Source: Trichosphaerium sp. ATCC 40318
Taxonomy: Eukaryota > Protista > Tubulinea
NCBI GenBank assembly: GCA_038496445.1
Contig: JALMLS010000385.1
Location: 62,001 to 126,000 of the forward strand
Length of the DNA: 64,000 nucleotides
Direction: 5' to 3'
The translations under genes were made by a program, and so were the position numbers. A model generated the notes under the pieces. It was given only the letters and a program-made list of their open reading frames with translations, did not search any database and was not told the origin of the DNA. The number at the start of each line of letters is the position of its first letter. The stretch's first letter is position 1. This document shows positions 11,356 to 42,212 of this stretch, in pieces.

Positions 11356-12367
11356 ATGACTTCAACGAGCATCTCAACTATTCCTACAGAGTTATTACAT
11401 GATATATGCGCTGTAGCATCTGGAAAAGATTTACTAACAATATCTGCGTTAACTACACGCTTCGTTGACGCCTCAGGTAATAATTAAAACTGTTTTAACA
11501 TGAATAATAACTTTAATCGTTTAGAATCGGCTTTCAGGCAAAAAATCAATAAAAAACTACAAAGACAGGTACTCCCACGCCCACTGACATTCTTAAAAAG
11601 ACAATAACAACAAATCGTTAACGTTTTTTTTTCTCATTCAAGCCGACACCTTCTGAGACCTGGAAAATGCAGTATTTTTGCCTACAGCACTTGTATTGTA
11701 CTCATAAATCGAAAGGATGGAGAGGGCAAGAAATAAGTATTTTTCCAGATGGTACAGCGGTTATTTGAACTGAATTATTGTAAAAACCTTAAGGGCTCTT
11801 TATAATATTTATTTGGGTTAGGTACATTTAAAGGATTCTTTATTATTCACCAAGGATGTGGATGGTCACATCGTTTTGAATTTGAAGGAACGTCTACATT
11901 CTCTTTGGTTGAAAGTGGCGTAAAAGGAACCTTTTTGCCTTCTTCTGTAGTTTACAGCTATCATAGTAAACGCAAATGGCAAAGAGGCGAAACAGTAAAA
12001 GTAACAGAAAAAAGTAAGTTAATTTAAAAATATTTTTTTGCACTATTTTTAGCGTCGACTTGGCTCTAATCAATTTTCCGAAAATCTATGCTAACTCACC
12101 GCGTTTTTGTACAAGCTTAACAAAGAATTCAAAACACGTCATTTCTTTGACAAACGGCAGCTGTTTGATCTCAAAATTAGCCAAAGAGCCATCCAAGAAT
12201 TAAGGGTTTTTTGCTTATGATTTACCTTCTGTCTAGATAGGAATGTTTTAGTACCAACAAAAGGTGGTATGGTTGCGCCTGTAGAATTTAACATAACTTT
12301 TACACGCCTTGGTAAGGCTGAAAATGGATGGGATAAGGAAATGAAAGAACAAGCAAGTGCCGAATAA
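11356..12367 (+). CDS. F-box protein with unrecognised C-terminal domain
   Basis: MTSTSISTIPTELLHDICAVASGKDLLTISALTTRF is F-box-like; several short introns; last exon NRNVLVPTKGG...EQASAE* ends at 12367. Confidence 0.65.
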
Positions 12368-12507
12368 ACTTTTTTTTTATTCACAATTTGATTAACATCC
12401 AACTTAGATGATCAGAAAGCATATAGGTGTATTTGGTTGTGGTATGGGATAGCACCTAGTATTACATAATACCATGCTGTAAAAATAATAAAAAACAAAG
12501 AAAATAC

Positions 12508-12676
12508 AGAATGGGGAATCTGGAAGTATAAAGAAGTACTGTTCTCCCACACCATCAATATTTTGAGCCCTCAGTCTCCGAACACGGACTATAGCACTCC
12601 GGCCCTCATTATGGGGAAGATTGGTATTGATGGTGAGAAAAAAACACTTCCATCAAACTTCCAGATTTTCCCTTCT
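12508..12676. repeat. Imperfect fold-back (hairpin/MITE-like) element
   Basis: Left arm GGGGAATCTGGAAGT...GAAGT...CACCATCAATA pairs with right arm TATTGATGGTG...ACTTC...ACTTCCAGATTTTCCC. Confidence 0.55.
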
Positions 12677-13069: not shown

Positions 13070-14073
13070 ATGGCGGAGAAATACATAAACAACGCTAATT
13101 CACACATATTTGACCTTGTTGCGCTTCCAATTGAACTGATAGTTCATATTCTCAAGCAAGGGAGTTATACACTCCATTCAGCCCAAACTTGTCGCCTTTT
13201 GCGAGATATTGTACATAACCATGTTGGATATAATGAAATCCGTATTGACCGTGTAAGCCAACTGAACATTCTTTCTGGCAGCCCATTACTCCTGAATACA
13301 CCTATTTATGTGCGCCCTTCAATATCTGATAAGCATTTCAAGATGTTAGCAGGTGTACATACAATTGACTTGCGATTTCGTGTAGCAATAATAGATGAAG
13401 GTTTAAAGGCATTGGCAGGTGTACATACGATAAATTTATCACTTACAAATGTAACAGATGAAGGTTTAAAGGCATTGGCGGGTGTACATACGATACATTT
13501 ATCATATACAGCTGTAACAGATGAAGGTTTAAAGGCATTGGCGGGTGTATATAAGATTGATTTATCACTTACAGCTGTAACAGATGAAGGTTTAAAGGCG
13601 TTGGCGGCGTACATACGATAAATTTATCATTTACAGCTGTAACGGATGAAGGTTTGAAGGCGTTGGCAGGTGTACATACAATTGAGTTGTACAAGTGTAC
13701 AGCAGTAACAGATGAAGGTTTAAAGGCATTGGCGGGTGTACATACGATACATTTATCACATACAGCTGTAACAGATGAAGGTTTAAAGGCATTGGCGGGT
13801 GTACATGAGATTGATTTATCATATACAAATGTAACAGATGAAGGTTTGAAGGCATTGGCGGGTGTATATAAGATTGATTTATCACATACAGCTGTAACAG
13901 ATGAAGGTTTAAAGGCATTGACGGGGTGTACATGATATTTATTTAGCAGGCACAAAATATGAATACAGGTATGAAGCCATTGGAAGGCGTATGTATAATG
14001 GAATTGTAAATCAATAACAGTTGATGGTATTTTTGCATTGGGAGACAAAGGTGTAGCGATACTATGCAAATAA
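13070..14073 (+). pseudogene. Intronless F-box + 24-aa leucine-rich-repeat gene, frameshifted
   Basis: F-box LVALPIELIVHIL, then about 8 near-identical 72-bp repeats encoding LAGVHTIxLSxTxVTDEGLKA; 1-nt deletion at ~13607 (TTGGCGGCGTAC vs TTGGCGGGTGTAC), 1-nt insertion at ~13924, further decay downstream. Confidence 0.8.
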
Positions 14074-14433: not shown

Positions 14434-15635
14434 ATGGGGAACAAACAACCTAAGCAGTATACGCAATCCGCACTGCTGAATATGCCCAATGAAGTGCTGG
14501 TTTGTATTTTGGTTCAATGTAAACCGAATCAGCTAAGCACTACAAGACTTGTAAGTACACACTTCCACGACCTCACACACGCAGCTGCAAAACAAAGAGT
14601 ACGTTTCACAGTTAACTAAAAAAAAAAACCGTAAGACGATATCAACGAAGTGTTATTTCTAGAATCTACGATCATATACTCCACAGATGAAAGATTTAAC
14701 AGTTTATATGATGGGAAGCGGTGGTAGACTACTATTTATTCATTGTTTCTTTCTATTTACTTATTATTTTGCGAAACCAGGGACCTACAAGTCATGTTTC
14801 ATGATACAATTTTGTAGTAAATATTTCGCACGTGATTTTTTTTTGTTGACACCGGACTATTGGACTAACTTTTTGTTTGTGTAGAGATGGCAACACGATG
14901 CAACAACAGAATTGGTACGTTTTTTCGTATTCAACTCTGTTTTAATTTGTCGTAATTCTCTTTTTTAGTCTGATCGGTGCGATACACGATTTCTTTGCGT
15001 CTCCTCTGACTAATACAAAGAAAAATTATGAAAGTGGATGGACTTGATGTACAGTTCGATATCATAGATACAAATGGAGAAAGAGACGTAATTGCTTTTT
15101 GTGCAGATGTTAGCAGTATGTTCTGACATTATTCTCTGTAGAATAGTTCCATGCATGAGTCATGTGTAAGGAATTATGATTCTTTTATTATTGGATACTC
15201 TATTACTTCACTGAACTCTTATCAATATTGTTATGAATACATAATTCCTACCATTCTAAGAATTAAACAGAATGACGATTTTAACAAAGTACATCACTTC
15301 TTCATTATGAGTACGGTTTAATCTTGTTTTTTAGATACCAGTAGTATTAATTGGAAACAAGAAAGATCTAACCAAAGAGCGTGAGGTCTCATATGCTGAT
15401 GGAAAAGGTGAAAAACATCAGCATGGTTTTTTTTTCTGATTTTTTTCTGTTTTTTTTTGTAGCATTGGCTGACAAGTACAGTCTTCCTTTTTTAGAAACA
15501 TCAGTAAAAGCAAGAGAAAATGTTGATGAGACTATGATGACCTTAGCAAGAGAGTATTGGAGAAAAAATTGCTCAGGTGGACAAGCATCATCGCCTAAAA
15601 AGAAAAAGAAGAAAAAATGGTACAAAATTGAATAA
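14434..15635 (+). CDS. F-box / Ras-family GTPase fusion (probable pseudo-GTPase)
   Basis: Exon 1 MGNKQ..LLNMPNEVLVCILVQC..RLVSTHF (F-box) splices in phase 0 to a Ras domain: GSGGTYKS, DATTE, DIIDTNGE, VLIGNKKDL, ETSVK; polybasic tail KKKKKKKWYKIE*. Eight exons give an uninterrupted frame. Confidence 0.85.
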
Positions 15636-16111
15636 ACCAGGTTTCTGCTGTCTAAAAGCAACAAGAAATAGAATTCATCATTGAAAAACAATAAATTGAT
15701 AAACAACCTACTACATGCGCTCTTGAAATTACCTCAATATGTTTGAGTTTGACTGAGTATACATTGTCAAGATGTTGTGCATCATTAATTTTGAGTCTGC
15801 TCATAAATATTGGCAGACTGATGGTGTCCTACTAGACCAATCCAAAATTTGTTAATATGAACGAAGATAATAGCGTTAAATAAGACAGTGTTTAGCAAGT
15901 AAAACAGTAATGGTAGATCAAGAATAGAGTTCATTGCATACACATTTGAACATTACTAAAAATGAACATGCGCTTATTGGGTCTGATTGCGTTTCCTTCA
16001 ATATAGCGTACTGTCTCTTGGACAATAATGTTTAATTACTTCAATAGCACCAATTGAACACTTACAATGCTTTTACATAAATGGCGTTTATTAAAGTAAA
16101 GATTAGTTTTT

Positions 16112-40413: not shown

Positions 40414-42212
40414 ATGGCAAACGAACTGAGTATAATTGTTTTTGGCTCAGGAGCAGTTGGAAAATCCTCAATAACTAATTCATTCGTTGGAAACATGGCC
40501 ATAGATGACTACGACCCAACACTAGAGGATTCGTACGCGTTACAACTAAATTTAACCAACTTAGTTAACAAAAAGACATCTAGATTCGAAAAACAGATAG
40601 AACTAAACGGAAAACAGCTGATTCTGCGTATTACTGATACTGCTGGTCCGGAAGAGTTTGCATCCTTACGAGAAGAGGTAAAACTAGTGTTAACCGCACA
40701 ATCTAACGTCTGATAAACAGTACATACGCAAAGGGGATGGATTTCTGGTGGTGTACAGTATTAATAACAAAAGTACATTTGAAAACGCTCTCAAGATTTG
40801 TGAACAAATATTCAAGTACGCGCTATCTAACGCTCTAACGCAGCTGTCATGAATATTGGCGTAAACTGCTGTTCCATTTTTACCATAAATGTCAATAACA
40901 ATTAAAAACAAGAGCACGTGATTGATGGCTCGCTCCAAATACATGTTGTGCTGTTTGCATTGCTATTCTTTTAATATCTTGTTGTAAGCAAAGGAAGTGT
41001 TAAGTTTTCGCAATCTATTCTACAAGCTGATTTTGCTTCATTAGCCTTTTAAACAACTGTTAGTAGTGATTTGGAGCAGTTTGAGGCCAAAAAAGAAGGC
41101 ACTCGCAGTAACAATAAAAATGTAGCTGTATTACTTTTAAATGCTGTTTTTGGCGTTTTTGTACAGTAGAGAGCCATGTAAGAGTATTGTTACACCAAGT
41201 ATTGCTTTCCCAGTTAAGCGGGGTTTAAAAAAACCAAAACACACTCTAATAGCCCCTCATGGCATCAAATAACCACATACAAGCGTTTAACATACCTATT
41301 GCAACGATGAGACAATGTATTTCATGTAAAGCAGTAGGAGGATCAATTAAACACCTAAAACACCAAGTATTGCATTGTGTGGGCAAAAAAAAGGCAGCAG
41401 AGCTTTATTCTATGCACGACATTTTTACAAATTCAAAGAATCATAAGTTATGTATCACCTAACAAAAGAGGAGCTAAGCGTAAAATGCAAAGTGTAACCT
41501 TAAGTATACAGACGGAGAAGAGGAAATTGTTAATTTGCTGAAGGAACATTTGACTTTTATGCCAAGTGAGCTGCATCTGCTTGGGTTATGTGTAGGGCCT
41601 ATTTACAGCTAAATAAAGTAGTTTAGTAACACGGAAGGGTTTTTAAAGTATTATTTTTAGACAATGATTGTTTATTGCTCAAATACTCCATTTACGCGTA
41701 GAAATCGCCATGTAATGTAGTTTAAGCAGTTTTTATTGCTTTTATCCATTTTTATACGAGTGCCGTATTTTGCAGCATTTAAATGGTACAGCACACCTTA
41801 GCACTACTGTTTACATCCGTCTAGTACAAAACTAGCTCGTAGAATAGATTGGATAAACTTAACATTTCCTTTAGACTTTGATTTACGCGAGCACATGTTT
41901 ATTCTTTGTTGTGATTGTTAAATACTCGGCTTACAACAAACTTATTTGGTTTTTTAATACAGGCTGAAAGAAGATGAGTATCCTGCTGTAGTCCTTGTAG
42001 GAAATAAAGTAGATTTGGAAGAACAAAGAGAAGTAACAAAACAAGAAGCAGAGGACTTTGCAGAGAAACATGATATTGCTTTTTTTGAATCATCCGCCAA
42101 AACACGTGTCAATATCACTGAACAATTCTACGAAGTAGCTAGAAGAGCAATTGATGATGAGCCAACTGATTTATGTTCTGTACAAAAAAGACGTCTTTGT
42201 ATGTTAATGTGA
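40414..42212 (+). CDS. ras: Ras-family small GTPase (4 exons, one ~1.15-kb intron)
   Basis: GSGAVGKS, YDPTLEDS, DTAGPEEF, GFLVVYSI, VLVGNKVDL, ESSAK, CAAX CMLM*. Confidence 0.92.

Follow-up and report, generated by a model that had tools for sequence, protein, structure and literature searches.

Can a single amoeban gene join an F-box to a GTPase of the Ras family, and what would such a protein do when its nucleotide pocket has lost some of the residues that handle the nucleotide? The question is raised by positions 14434-15635 of the forward strand in a stretch of 64,000 nucleotides from Trichosphaerium sp. ATCC 40318 (contig JALMLS010000385.1, positions 62,001 to 126,000). This whole 64-kb stretch, which is AT-rich, intron-dense eukaryotic DNA, is referred to below as the window. 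A preliminary description of the locus, made from the letters alone, had proposed a fusion of an F-box with a Ras fold. We find one expressed gene with both domains. Its product is in our view best explained as a substrate receptor of the SCF (Skp1-Cullin-1) ubiquitin ligase, in which the F-box would dock on Skp1 and the Ras-like domain would serve as a partner-binding module, nucleotide cycling being dispensable for the family; we give this reading a probability of roughly 0.55.

The evidence for transcription comes from contigs of a public run (X1, labelled 'RNA?') that were aligned to the window. A contig of 428 nucleotides covers 14461-14598 in the first exon and then all of the downstream exons as far as 15218, while a contig of 351 nucleotides spans 15211-15662. 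The F-box exon and all of the Ras exons consequently lie within one mRNA, which extends over 14461-15662, and the possibility that they belong to separate transcripts and hence to two genes is answered in favor of one. Since these contigs are free of all eight introns at consensus borders, an origin from mRNA is the only possibility in spite of the uncertain label of the run. The spliced coding sequence consists of nine exons and encodes 256 amino acids with no internal stop. It begins with the ATG at 14434, which is directly preceded by an in-frame TAA, and ends with the stop codon at 15633-15635; both ends are those of the preliminary description. The single open frame proposed there was also correct, but the number of exons was not: the description had counted eight, and the gene has nine, including a micro-exon of 8 nucleotides, together with a GC-AG intron.

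Exon 1 (14434-14598, residues 1-55) holds the start codon, an N-terminus beginning MGNKQ and the whole F-box, and it ends in phase 0. Its junction with exon 2, which had been singled out for an RNA check, is directly visible in the contig as a joint from 14598 to 14663 with GT..AG borders. Exon 2 (14663-14723) encodes residues 56-75 plus one further nucleotide and contains the linker and strand beta-1 as well as the initial half of the P-loop (MMGSGG); a second GT..AG joint, from 14723 to 14781, leads to exon 3 (14781-14827), which completes the P-loop (TYKS) and adds helix alpha-1 (CFMIQFCSKYF). The P-loop GSGGTYKS (14714-14794) is thus split between two exons. The following intron (14828-14884) has 57 nucleotides and non-canonical GC-AG borders (GCACGT...TGTAG), as is evident from the contig joint between 14827 and 14885. 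Exon 4 (14885-14914), also seen in the contig, encodes switch I (RWQHDATTEL). The next joint, from 14914 to 15020, carries the letters TCTGATC in between; they come from micro-exon 5 (14969-14976, TCTGATCG), which provides the codons for S, D and R and is flanked in the genome by AG and GT. Exon 6 (15021-15087) encodes strands beta-2 and beta-3 together with the G3 motif DTNGE (15067-15081), which aligns to DILDTAGQED of Ral-A. Switch II with helix alpha-2, strand beta-4 and helix alpha-3 are found in exon 7 (15142-15288), and strand beta-5 and the G4 motif NKKD (15356-15367) in exon 8 (15335-15407). Exon 9 (15463-15635) adds helix alpha-4, the G5 motif SVK (15501-15509), helix alpha-5, a poly-Lys tail (15597-15617) and the stop codon. 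These last exons are connected by contig joints from 15087 to 15142, 15288 to 15335 and 15407 to 15463. The stop codon is overlapped by an AATAAA (15631-15636), which we infer to be the polyadenylation signal; 26 nucleotides further downstream, at 15662, the contig comes to its end.

A model restricted to GT-AG introns was also tried. It gave dozens of open paths, none of which contained the Ras-like switch I frame RWQHDATTEL, and the matter was settled by the transcript contigs.

For the assignment of domains the exons were searched singly against Pfam and the PDB, and the whole spliced protein was compared by BLASTP with a canonical Ras-family protein that is also encoded in the window. The F-box occupies 14473-14574 (residues 14-47, LLNMPNEVLVCIL...RLVSTHFHDL). 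Exon 1 matches the Pfam F-box profile PF00646 with 26 bits (cut-off 20.5; E = 8.1e-6) and the F-box-like profile PF12937 with 23.7 bits, so that the F-box of the preliminary description is recovered by a hidden Markov model above its curated threshold. A phmmer search of the PDB with exon 1 gave no match. Exons 7, 8 and 9 match the Ras profile PF00071 in collinear order, at profile positions 63-102, 105-128 and 130-159, with 16.4, 20.8 and 17.7 bits; each of these scores is below the cut-off of 21.6 because the pieces are short. The comparison of the whole protein with the canonical Ras of the window gave an E value of 2e-20 over residues 66-229. The solved chains nearest to single exons are those of K-Ras, Ral-A, M-Ras, R-Ras2 and R-Ras, and exon 7 aligns to M-Ras, R-Ras2 and H-Ras residues 65-109. 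The nearest structures and the BLASTP result together place the G domain in the Ras family proper and not among the Rab, Rho or Arf proteins. The order of the protein is therefore an N-terminus of 13 residues, the F-box, a linker of about 15 residues, a divergent Ras-family G domain (residues ~66-232) and the poly-Lys tail. Transcripts, Pfam and BLASTP thus agree that one expressed gene combines an F-box with a complete G domain of the Ras family.

The G motifs lie at residues 73-80 (GSGGTYKS), 96-100 (DATTE), 120-124 (DTNGE), 183-186 (NKKD) and 213-215 (SVK) of the spliced protein, and all of the substitutions that had been read from the letters are present. The P-loop departs from the Walker A pattern GxxxxGK[ST] by a Tyr at the second invariant Gly (Gly15 of Ras); Lys16 and Ser17 are kept, and so is the equivalent of Phe28 (in KYF). 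G3 departs from DxxGQ: it retains Asp57 and Gly60 but has Asn for Ala59 and Glu for Gln61. G4 is intact. In G5 the Val of SVK corresponds to an A146V change, and the best PDB match of exon 9 is a KRAS4b chain reading ETSVKTRQ, which itself carries A146V. A change of the G15A type causes a dramatic drop in nucleotide affinity (PMC4905258). With a Tyr at the second Gly of Walker A and a Val in place of Ala146, the binding of nucleotide by the window protein is probably weakened.

A relative of the protein carries this decay further. A phmmer search with exon 1 against 1.84 billion representative proteins found one true relative, P0001. Another match, P0002, was rejected as an unrelated multi-F-box protein. 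Searches of 5.8 billion proteins with P0001 as the query, and then with a profile of P0001 and the exons, returned nothing besides P0001. This protein has 244 amino acids, comes from an MMETSP transcriptome and is labelled as a complete open reading frame. It matches the layout of the window protein, with the MGNKQ start, an F-box (27.9 bits in Pfam), a Ras domain (also in Pfam) and a poly-Lys tail, and is 43% identical to it overall. P0001 is without some 15 residues that cover the P-loop Lys and helix alpha-1, and its Pfam Ras match starts only at profile position 31; it is also without Thr35, and it reads DICTFD, GYKM and ATV at G3, G4 and G5. In the absence of the P-loop Lys, DxxG, NKxD and SAK, canonical nucleotide binding should be impossible for P0001.

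Metagenomes were scanned as well. Exon 1 gave no match there. P0001 fetched the loci L001-L004, which are ordinary Rab8/10-like genes sharing DKYGIPFFETSAK and not members of the family; they have GDSGVGKT, WDTAGQE and NKCD motifs, a C-terminal CC and an intron after the P-loop exon. In the transcript run, contigs that match only about 37 nucleotides of the window gene (15175-15211, the SFIIGYSITS region) diverge from the window to the left and to the right of it. Paralogues that have this conserved stretch in common are their probable source.

Is the window protein then still a GTP switch? In that case its nucleotide state would gate the recruitment of SCF substrates or the localisation of the protein. 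We consider this a serious rival, albeit one of rather low probability. The equivalents of K16, S17, F28, T35, D57 and G60, as well as NKKD and the S and K of SxK, are all kept, so that GTP binding may persist, and a change of Gln61 to Glu is not known to inactivate Ras. These points weigh against the receptor reading, as does the AlphaFold model of P0001, which was computed from an alignment of four rows and is unusable (pLDDT, the predicted local distance difference test, of 37). The earlier term 'nucleotide-poor' is plausible with regard to the Tyr at Gly15, but the residues that are kept may allow some GTP binding. A role of this kind has also been suggested for the F-box-GTPases of Naegleria, for which GTPase-dependent ubiquitination is considered (PMC8296547, Additional file 4). 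Against a working switch speak the Tyr at a nearly invariant position of the P-loop and, on the side of the family, P0001, which lost all G motifs and retained the architecture. Because P0001 has lost every nucleotide-binding motif and has kept the F-box and the layout, the family appears to be independent of nucleotide binding, which favors a receptor over a switch.

The layout itself points in the same direction. The standard SCF receptor has its F-box at the N-terminus and a binding domain at the C-terminus, and the claim of the preliminary description that the protein is an E3 substrate receptor remains the natural reading of such a layout. We infer from the domain content that the F-box would dock on Skp1 of the SCF ligase; the Ras-like domain, being the only other domain, would bind the partner destined for ubiquitination, as happens in FBXO4. 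Two further parts of the earlier claim, a membrane tether by a myristoylation motif and the capture of exchange factors or effectors of Ras, did not hold up as well.

In its specific form the capture idea makes the protein a trap: a nucleotide-poor Ras mimic that hands Cdc25-type guanine nucleotide exchange factors (GEFs) for Ras, or Ras effectors, to the SCF ligase at the membrane. Tyr64 and Tyr71 of Ras are key contacts for GEFs of this type. In the alignment of exon 7 with H-Ras residues 65-109 the positions of Tyr64 and Tyr71 are occupied by Asn and Cys, and Met67 is kept. Switch I (HDATTELS) retains Thr35 and the core D-x-T-x-E, which is in favor of a trap, but in the effector loop Asp38 is replaced by Leu and Tyr40 by Asp. 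Substitutions at Gly15 are known to leave GTPases free of nucleotide; such proteins bind GEFs tightly and serve as baits for them (PMC4905258), and the equivalent of A146V is present too, in a form that is found in the best PDB match of exon 9. The window protein resembles the laboratory and oncogenic Ras mutants G15A, S17N and A146V in so far as it is altered at G15 (to Tyr) and at A146 (to Val). These mutants, however, are point changes in a canonical Ras, whereas here the switch II and effector-loop contacts have diverged too; hence their behavior is not simply transferable to the window protein, and no canonical Ras partner can be deduced for it. P0001 is without the whole segment of P-loop and alpha-1 and without Thr35, and hence without the part that would be opened by a GEF, which makes a GEF-type interface common to the family unlikely, and the myristoylation motif that would bring the trap to the membrane is non-canonical. 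Together, these data weaken the proposal of a bait for RasGEFs, and we regard it as unlikely.

The two ends of the protein were examined for signals of localisation. A probable myristoylation signal had been claimed for the N-terminus. The PROSITE pattern PS00008, G-{EDRKHPFYW}-x(2)-[STAGCN]-{P}, does not match here: MGNKQPK has a Pro (residue 6) at the [STAGCN] position, and the start of P0001, MGNKQQK, has a Gln at the same position. The claim of a probable signal is thus not borne out in either family member. Gly2 is kept in both proteins, and its myristoylation is possible. The sequence MGNKQP also occurs in a Naegleria F-box-Rab-like protein, XP_002677491.1 (corrected), with 22 residues before it (PMC8296547, supplementary file 10). 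This may be a coincidence, or may be a common N-terminal signal if that Met is the start codon. At the other end, KKKKKKKWYKIE, there is no CAAX box, as described before, and no Cys in the last 20 residues. The poly-Lys tail was aligned by HMMER to the polybasic region of K-Ras4B; it may form a patch at the membrane, like K-Ras4B though with no lipid, or act as a nuclear signal.

The comparison of the two family members bears on a less favorable explanation, in which the gene is a member of a birth-and-death family that is transcribed and open without a maintained function. The G motifs are degenerating in the window protein and in P0001, and birth-and-death dynamics have been described for the F-box-Rab-like clades of Naegleria (PMC8296547). 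Drift of this kind is nevertheless very unlikely. The frame of 256 codons is intact over nine exons, the micro-exon and the GC-AG intron are correctly spliced in RNA, and although P0001 is only 43% identical overall, conservation extends to its N-terminus, F-box, alpha-4 region and poly-Lys tail. The conservation is also uneven: the F-box exon is 62% identical between the two proteins and the G domain 40%. An F-box that is more conserved than the G domain is the reverse of what a working Ras would show, and fits a constraint on ligase docking combined with a diversifying binding domain; this pattern rests on two family members.

How does the gene compare with F-box-GTPase fusions that are already known? 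Human FBXO4 (Fbx4) serves SCF as the receptor for the substrates TRF1 and cyclin D1, and its GTPase-like domain is free of nucleotide. To our knowledge it is the only characterised case in which a GTPase fold serves as the substrate-binding domain of SCF, and we know of no protist F-box-GTPase fusion that has been demonstrated to be a ligase subunit. In FBXO4 the substrate is bound by way of a small GTPase domain called 'atypical' (PMC7086354), and the layout is given as a D (dimerisation) domain, the F-box, a linker and a substrate-binding domain (PMC9101129). The likeness to the window protein is in the order, an F-box and then a domain with the fold of a small GTPase, which in FBXO4 acts as a substrate-binding module and not as a switch. 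In contrast to FBXO4 with its N-terminal dimerisation domain and linker, the window protein has only 13 residues before the F-box and about 15 after it; it is also clearly of the Ras family, with most G motifs still present. The two genes are most likely independent fusions.

A structural comparison of P0001 in the Atlas touches the same question. Its Atlas model has a predicted TM-score (pTM) of 0.62 and matches Ras-family folds with TM values of about 0.6. A feature search with P0001 placed FBXO4 clusters on top, with a score of 0.83 that is below the level treated as meaningful and can serve as a lead only. The chordate FBXO4 clusters of the Atlas have no Pfam Ras match, and a mollusc cluster has an Arf match.

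TbFRP of Trypanosoma brucei, which is found across Euglenozoa, has the order FYVE-F-box-GTPase, a functional FYVE domain that binds phosphatidylinositol 3-phosphate and a Rab18/Ypt6-like G domain; it lacks a CAAX box, and its N-terminus is proposed to hold an element for membrane targeting instead (PMC3593210). TbFRP and the window protein both carry an F-box directly upstream of a Ras-superfamily G domain, and CAAX is absent from both. They differ in the FYVE domain, for which Pfam found no match in exon 1, and in the G domain, which in the window protein is Ras/Rap/R-Ras-like with a defective P-loop. The authors linked the F-box of TbFRP, in a speculation, to the rapid proteolysis of the protein (PMC3593210). 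By analogy, the window protein could be a Ras-like signalling protein which its F-box delivers to SCF so that it is itself rapidly degraded, with the Lys-rich tail as a conceivable acceptor site. F-box proteins, however, are generally adaptors, in which autoubiquitination is a by-product that requires no fused signalling domain, and the degenerate G motifs speak against a signalling GTPase in need of tight control. Of the explanations weighed here we consider self-turnover the least probable.

Naegleria has many F-box-GTPase fusions with Rab-like, Rho, Ran and G-alpha partners, and the single multidomain Ras of this organism has a BTB domain and not an F-box (PMC8296547). Members of the ARF family have likewise been fused to F-box or BTB domains in a lineage-specific manner (PMC8358228). 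Both are expanded families that have been read as a link between GTPases and ubiquitination. The window gene shares with these fusions the lineage-specific occurrence, the F-box on a domain of the Ras superfamily and the decay of some members; it differs from them in that the partner is a Ras-family domain and the host an amoebozoan. The surveys of Naegleria, trypanosomes and the ARF family list no F-box on a domain of the Ras family proper, and our literature search found no paper combining 'pseudoGTPase' and 'F-box'. The statement that this architecture had not been characterised is thus wrong in the broad sense, given the F-box-GTPase fusions of FBXO4, trypanosomes, Naegleria and the ARF family. 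The principle of the fusion is already known, and the novelty lies in a partner of the Ras type, in the amoebozoan host and in a pocket that is half degenerate.

Several other genes of the window touch on this one. The canonical Ras-family gene used in the BLASTP comparison consists of exons at 40414-40677, 40721-40815 and 41963-42212 (+), in a model that was built from GT-AG sites and the open frame alone. It has the motifs GSGAVGKS, DTAGPE (with Pro at Gln61), NKVD and SAK and a CAAX box (CMLM). Some 17 residues are inserted between switch I and beta-3, and one intron is about 1.1 kb long. Directly upstream of the F-box-Ras gene lies an F-box-like gene with many near-identical leucine-rich repeats (13070-13935, +; VTDEGLKALAGVHTI...), which matches Pfam LRR_6 with an E value of 2.8e-13 and F-box-like with 17.5 bits. 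Many contigs of the transcript run align to it partly or twice, which suggests that it belongs to a large repeated family. The F-box of this neighbor has no detectable similarity to exon 1, which leaves the idea of an F-box exon copied from this gene without support. The reverse strand has a second F-box-like N-terminus (LLELPTELLAAILL) at ~58199-57752, and sequence resembling leucine-rich repeats comes after it. A spliced transcript at 11821-12625 (-), represented by a contig of 821 nucleotides, has two introns, which when placed on the forward strand are one GT..AG and one GC..AG. GC-AG introns hence seem not to be rare in the Trichosphaerium genome.

This has a practical consequence. Gene prediction in this genome must permit GC-AG introns and micro-exons of 8 nucleotides, as the Ras frame is otherwise not assembled.

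With regard to biology, the gene is a real and lineage-restricted new example of an F-box-GTPase fusion. A more far-reaching idea is that such proteins are amoeba-specific 'decoy-degraders', non-cycling Ras look-alikes on an F-box by which whatever grabs Ras would be ubiquitinated and destroyed. We think this unlikely. If it were true, the targets could be the amoeba's own Ras regulators or effectors, or proteins that are injected by intracellular bacteria and aimed at the small GTPases of the host, and the combination of a fast-diverging G domain with a conserved F-box would be the mark of an arms race, in analogy to the decoys that are integrated in immune receptors of plants. Independent of this idea, the window gene provides a compact (256 amino acids), transcript-verified example of the Ras type, with a P-loop that is part-way to a pseudo-GTPase, and P0001 has gone all the way. 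The pair offers a simple system for finding out how a switch domain turns into a pure binding module, and what such a receptor recruits.

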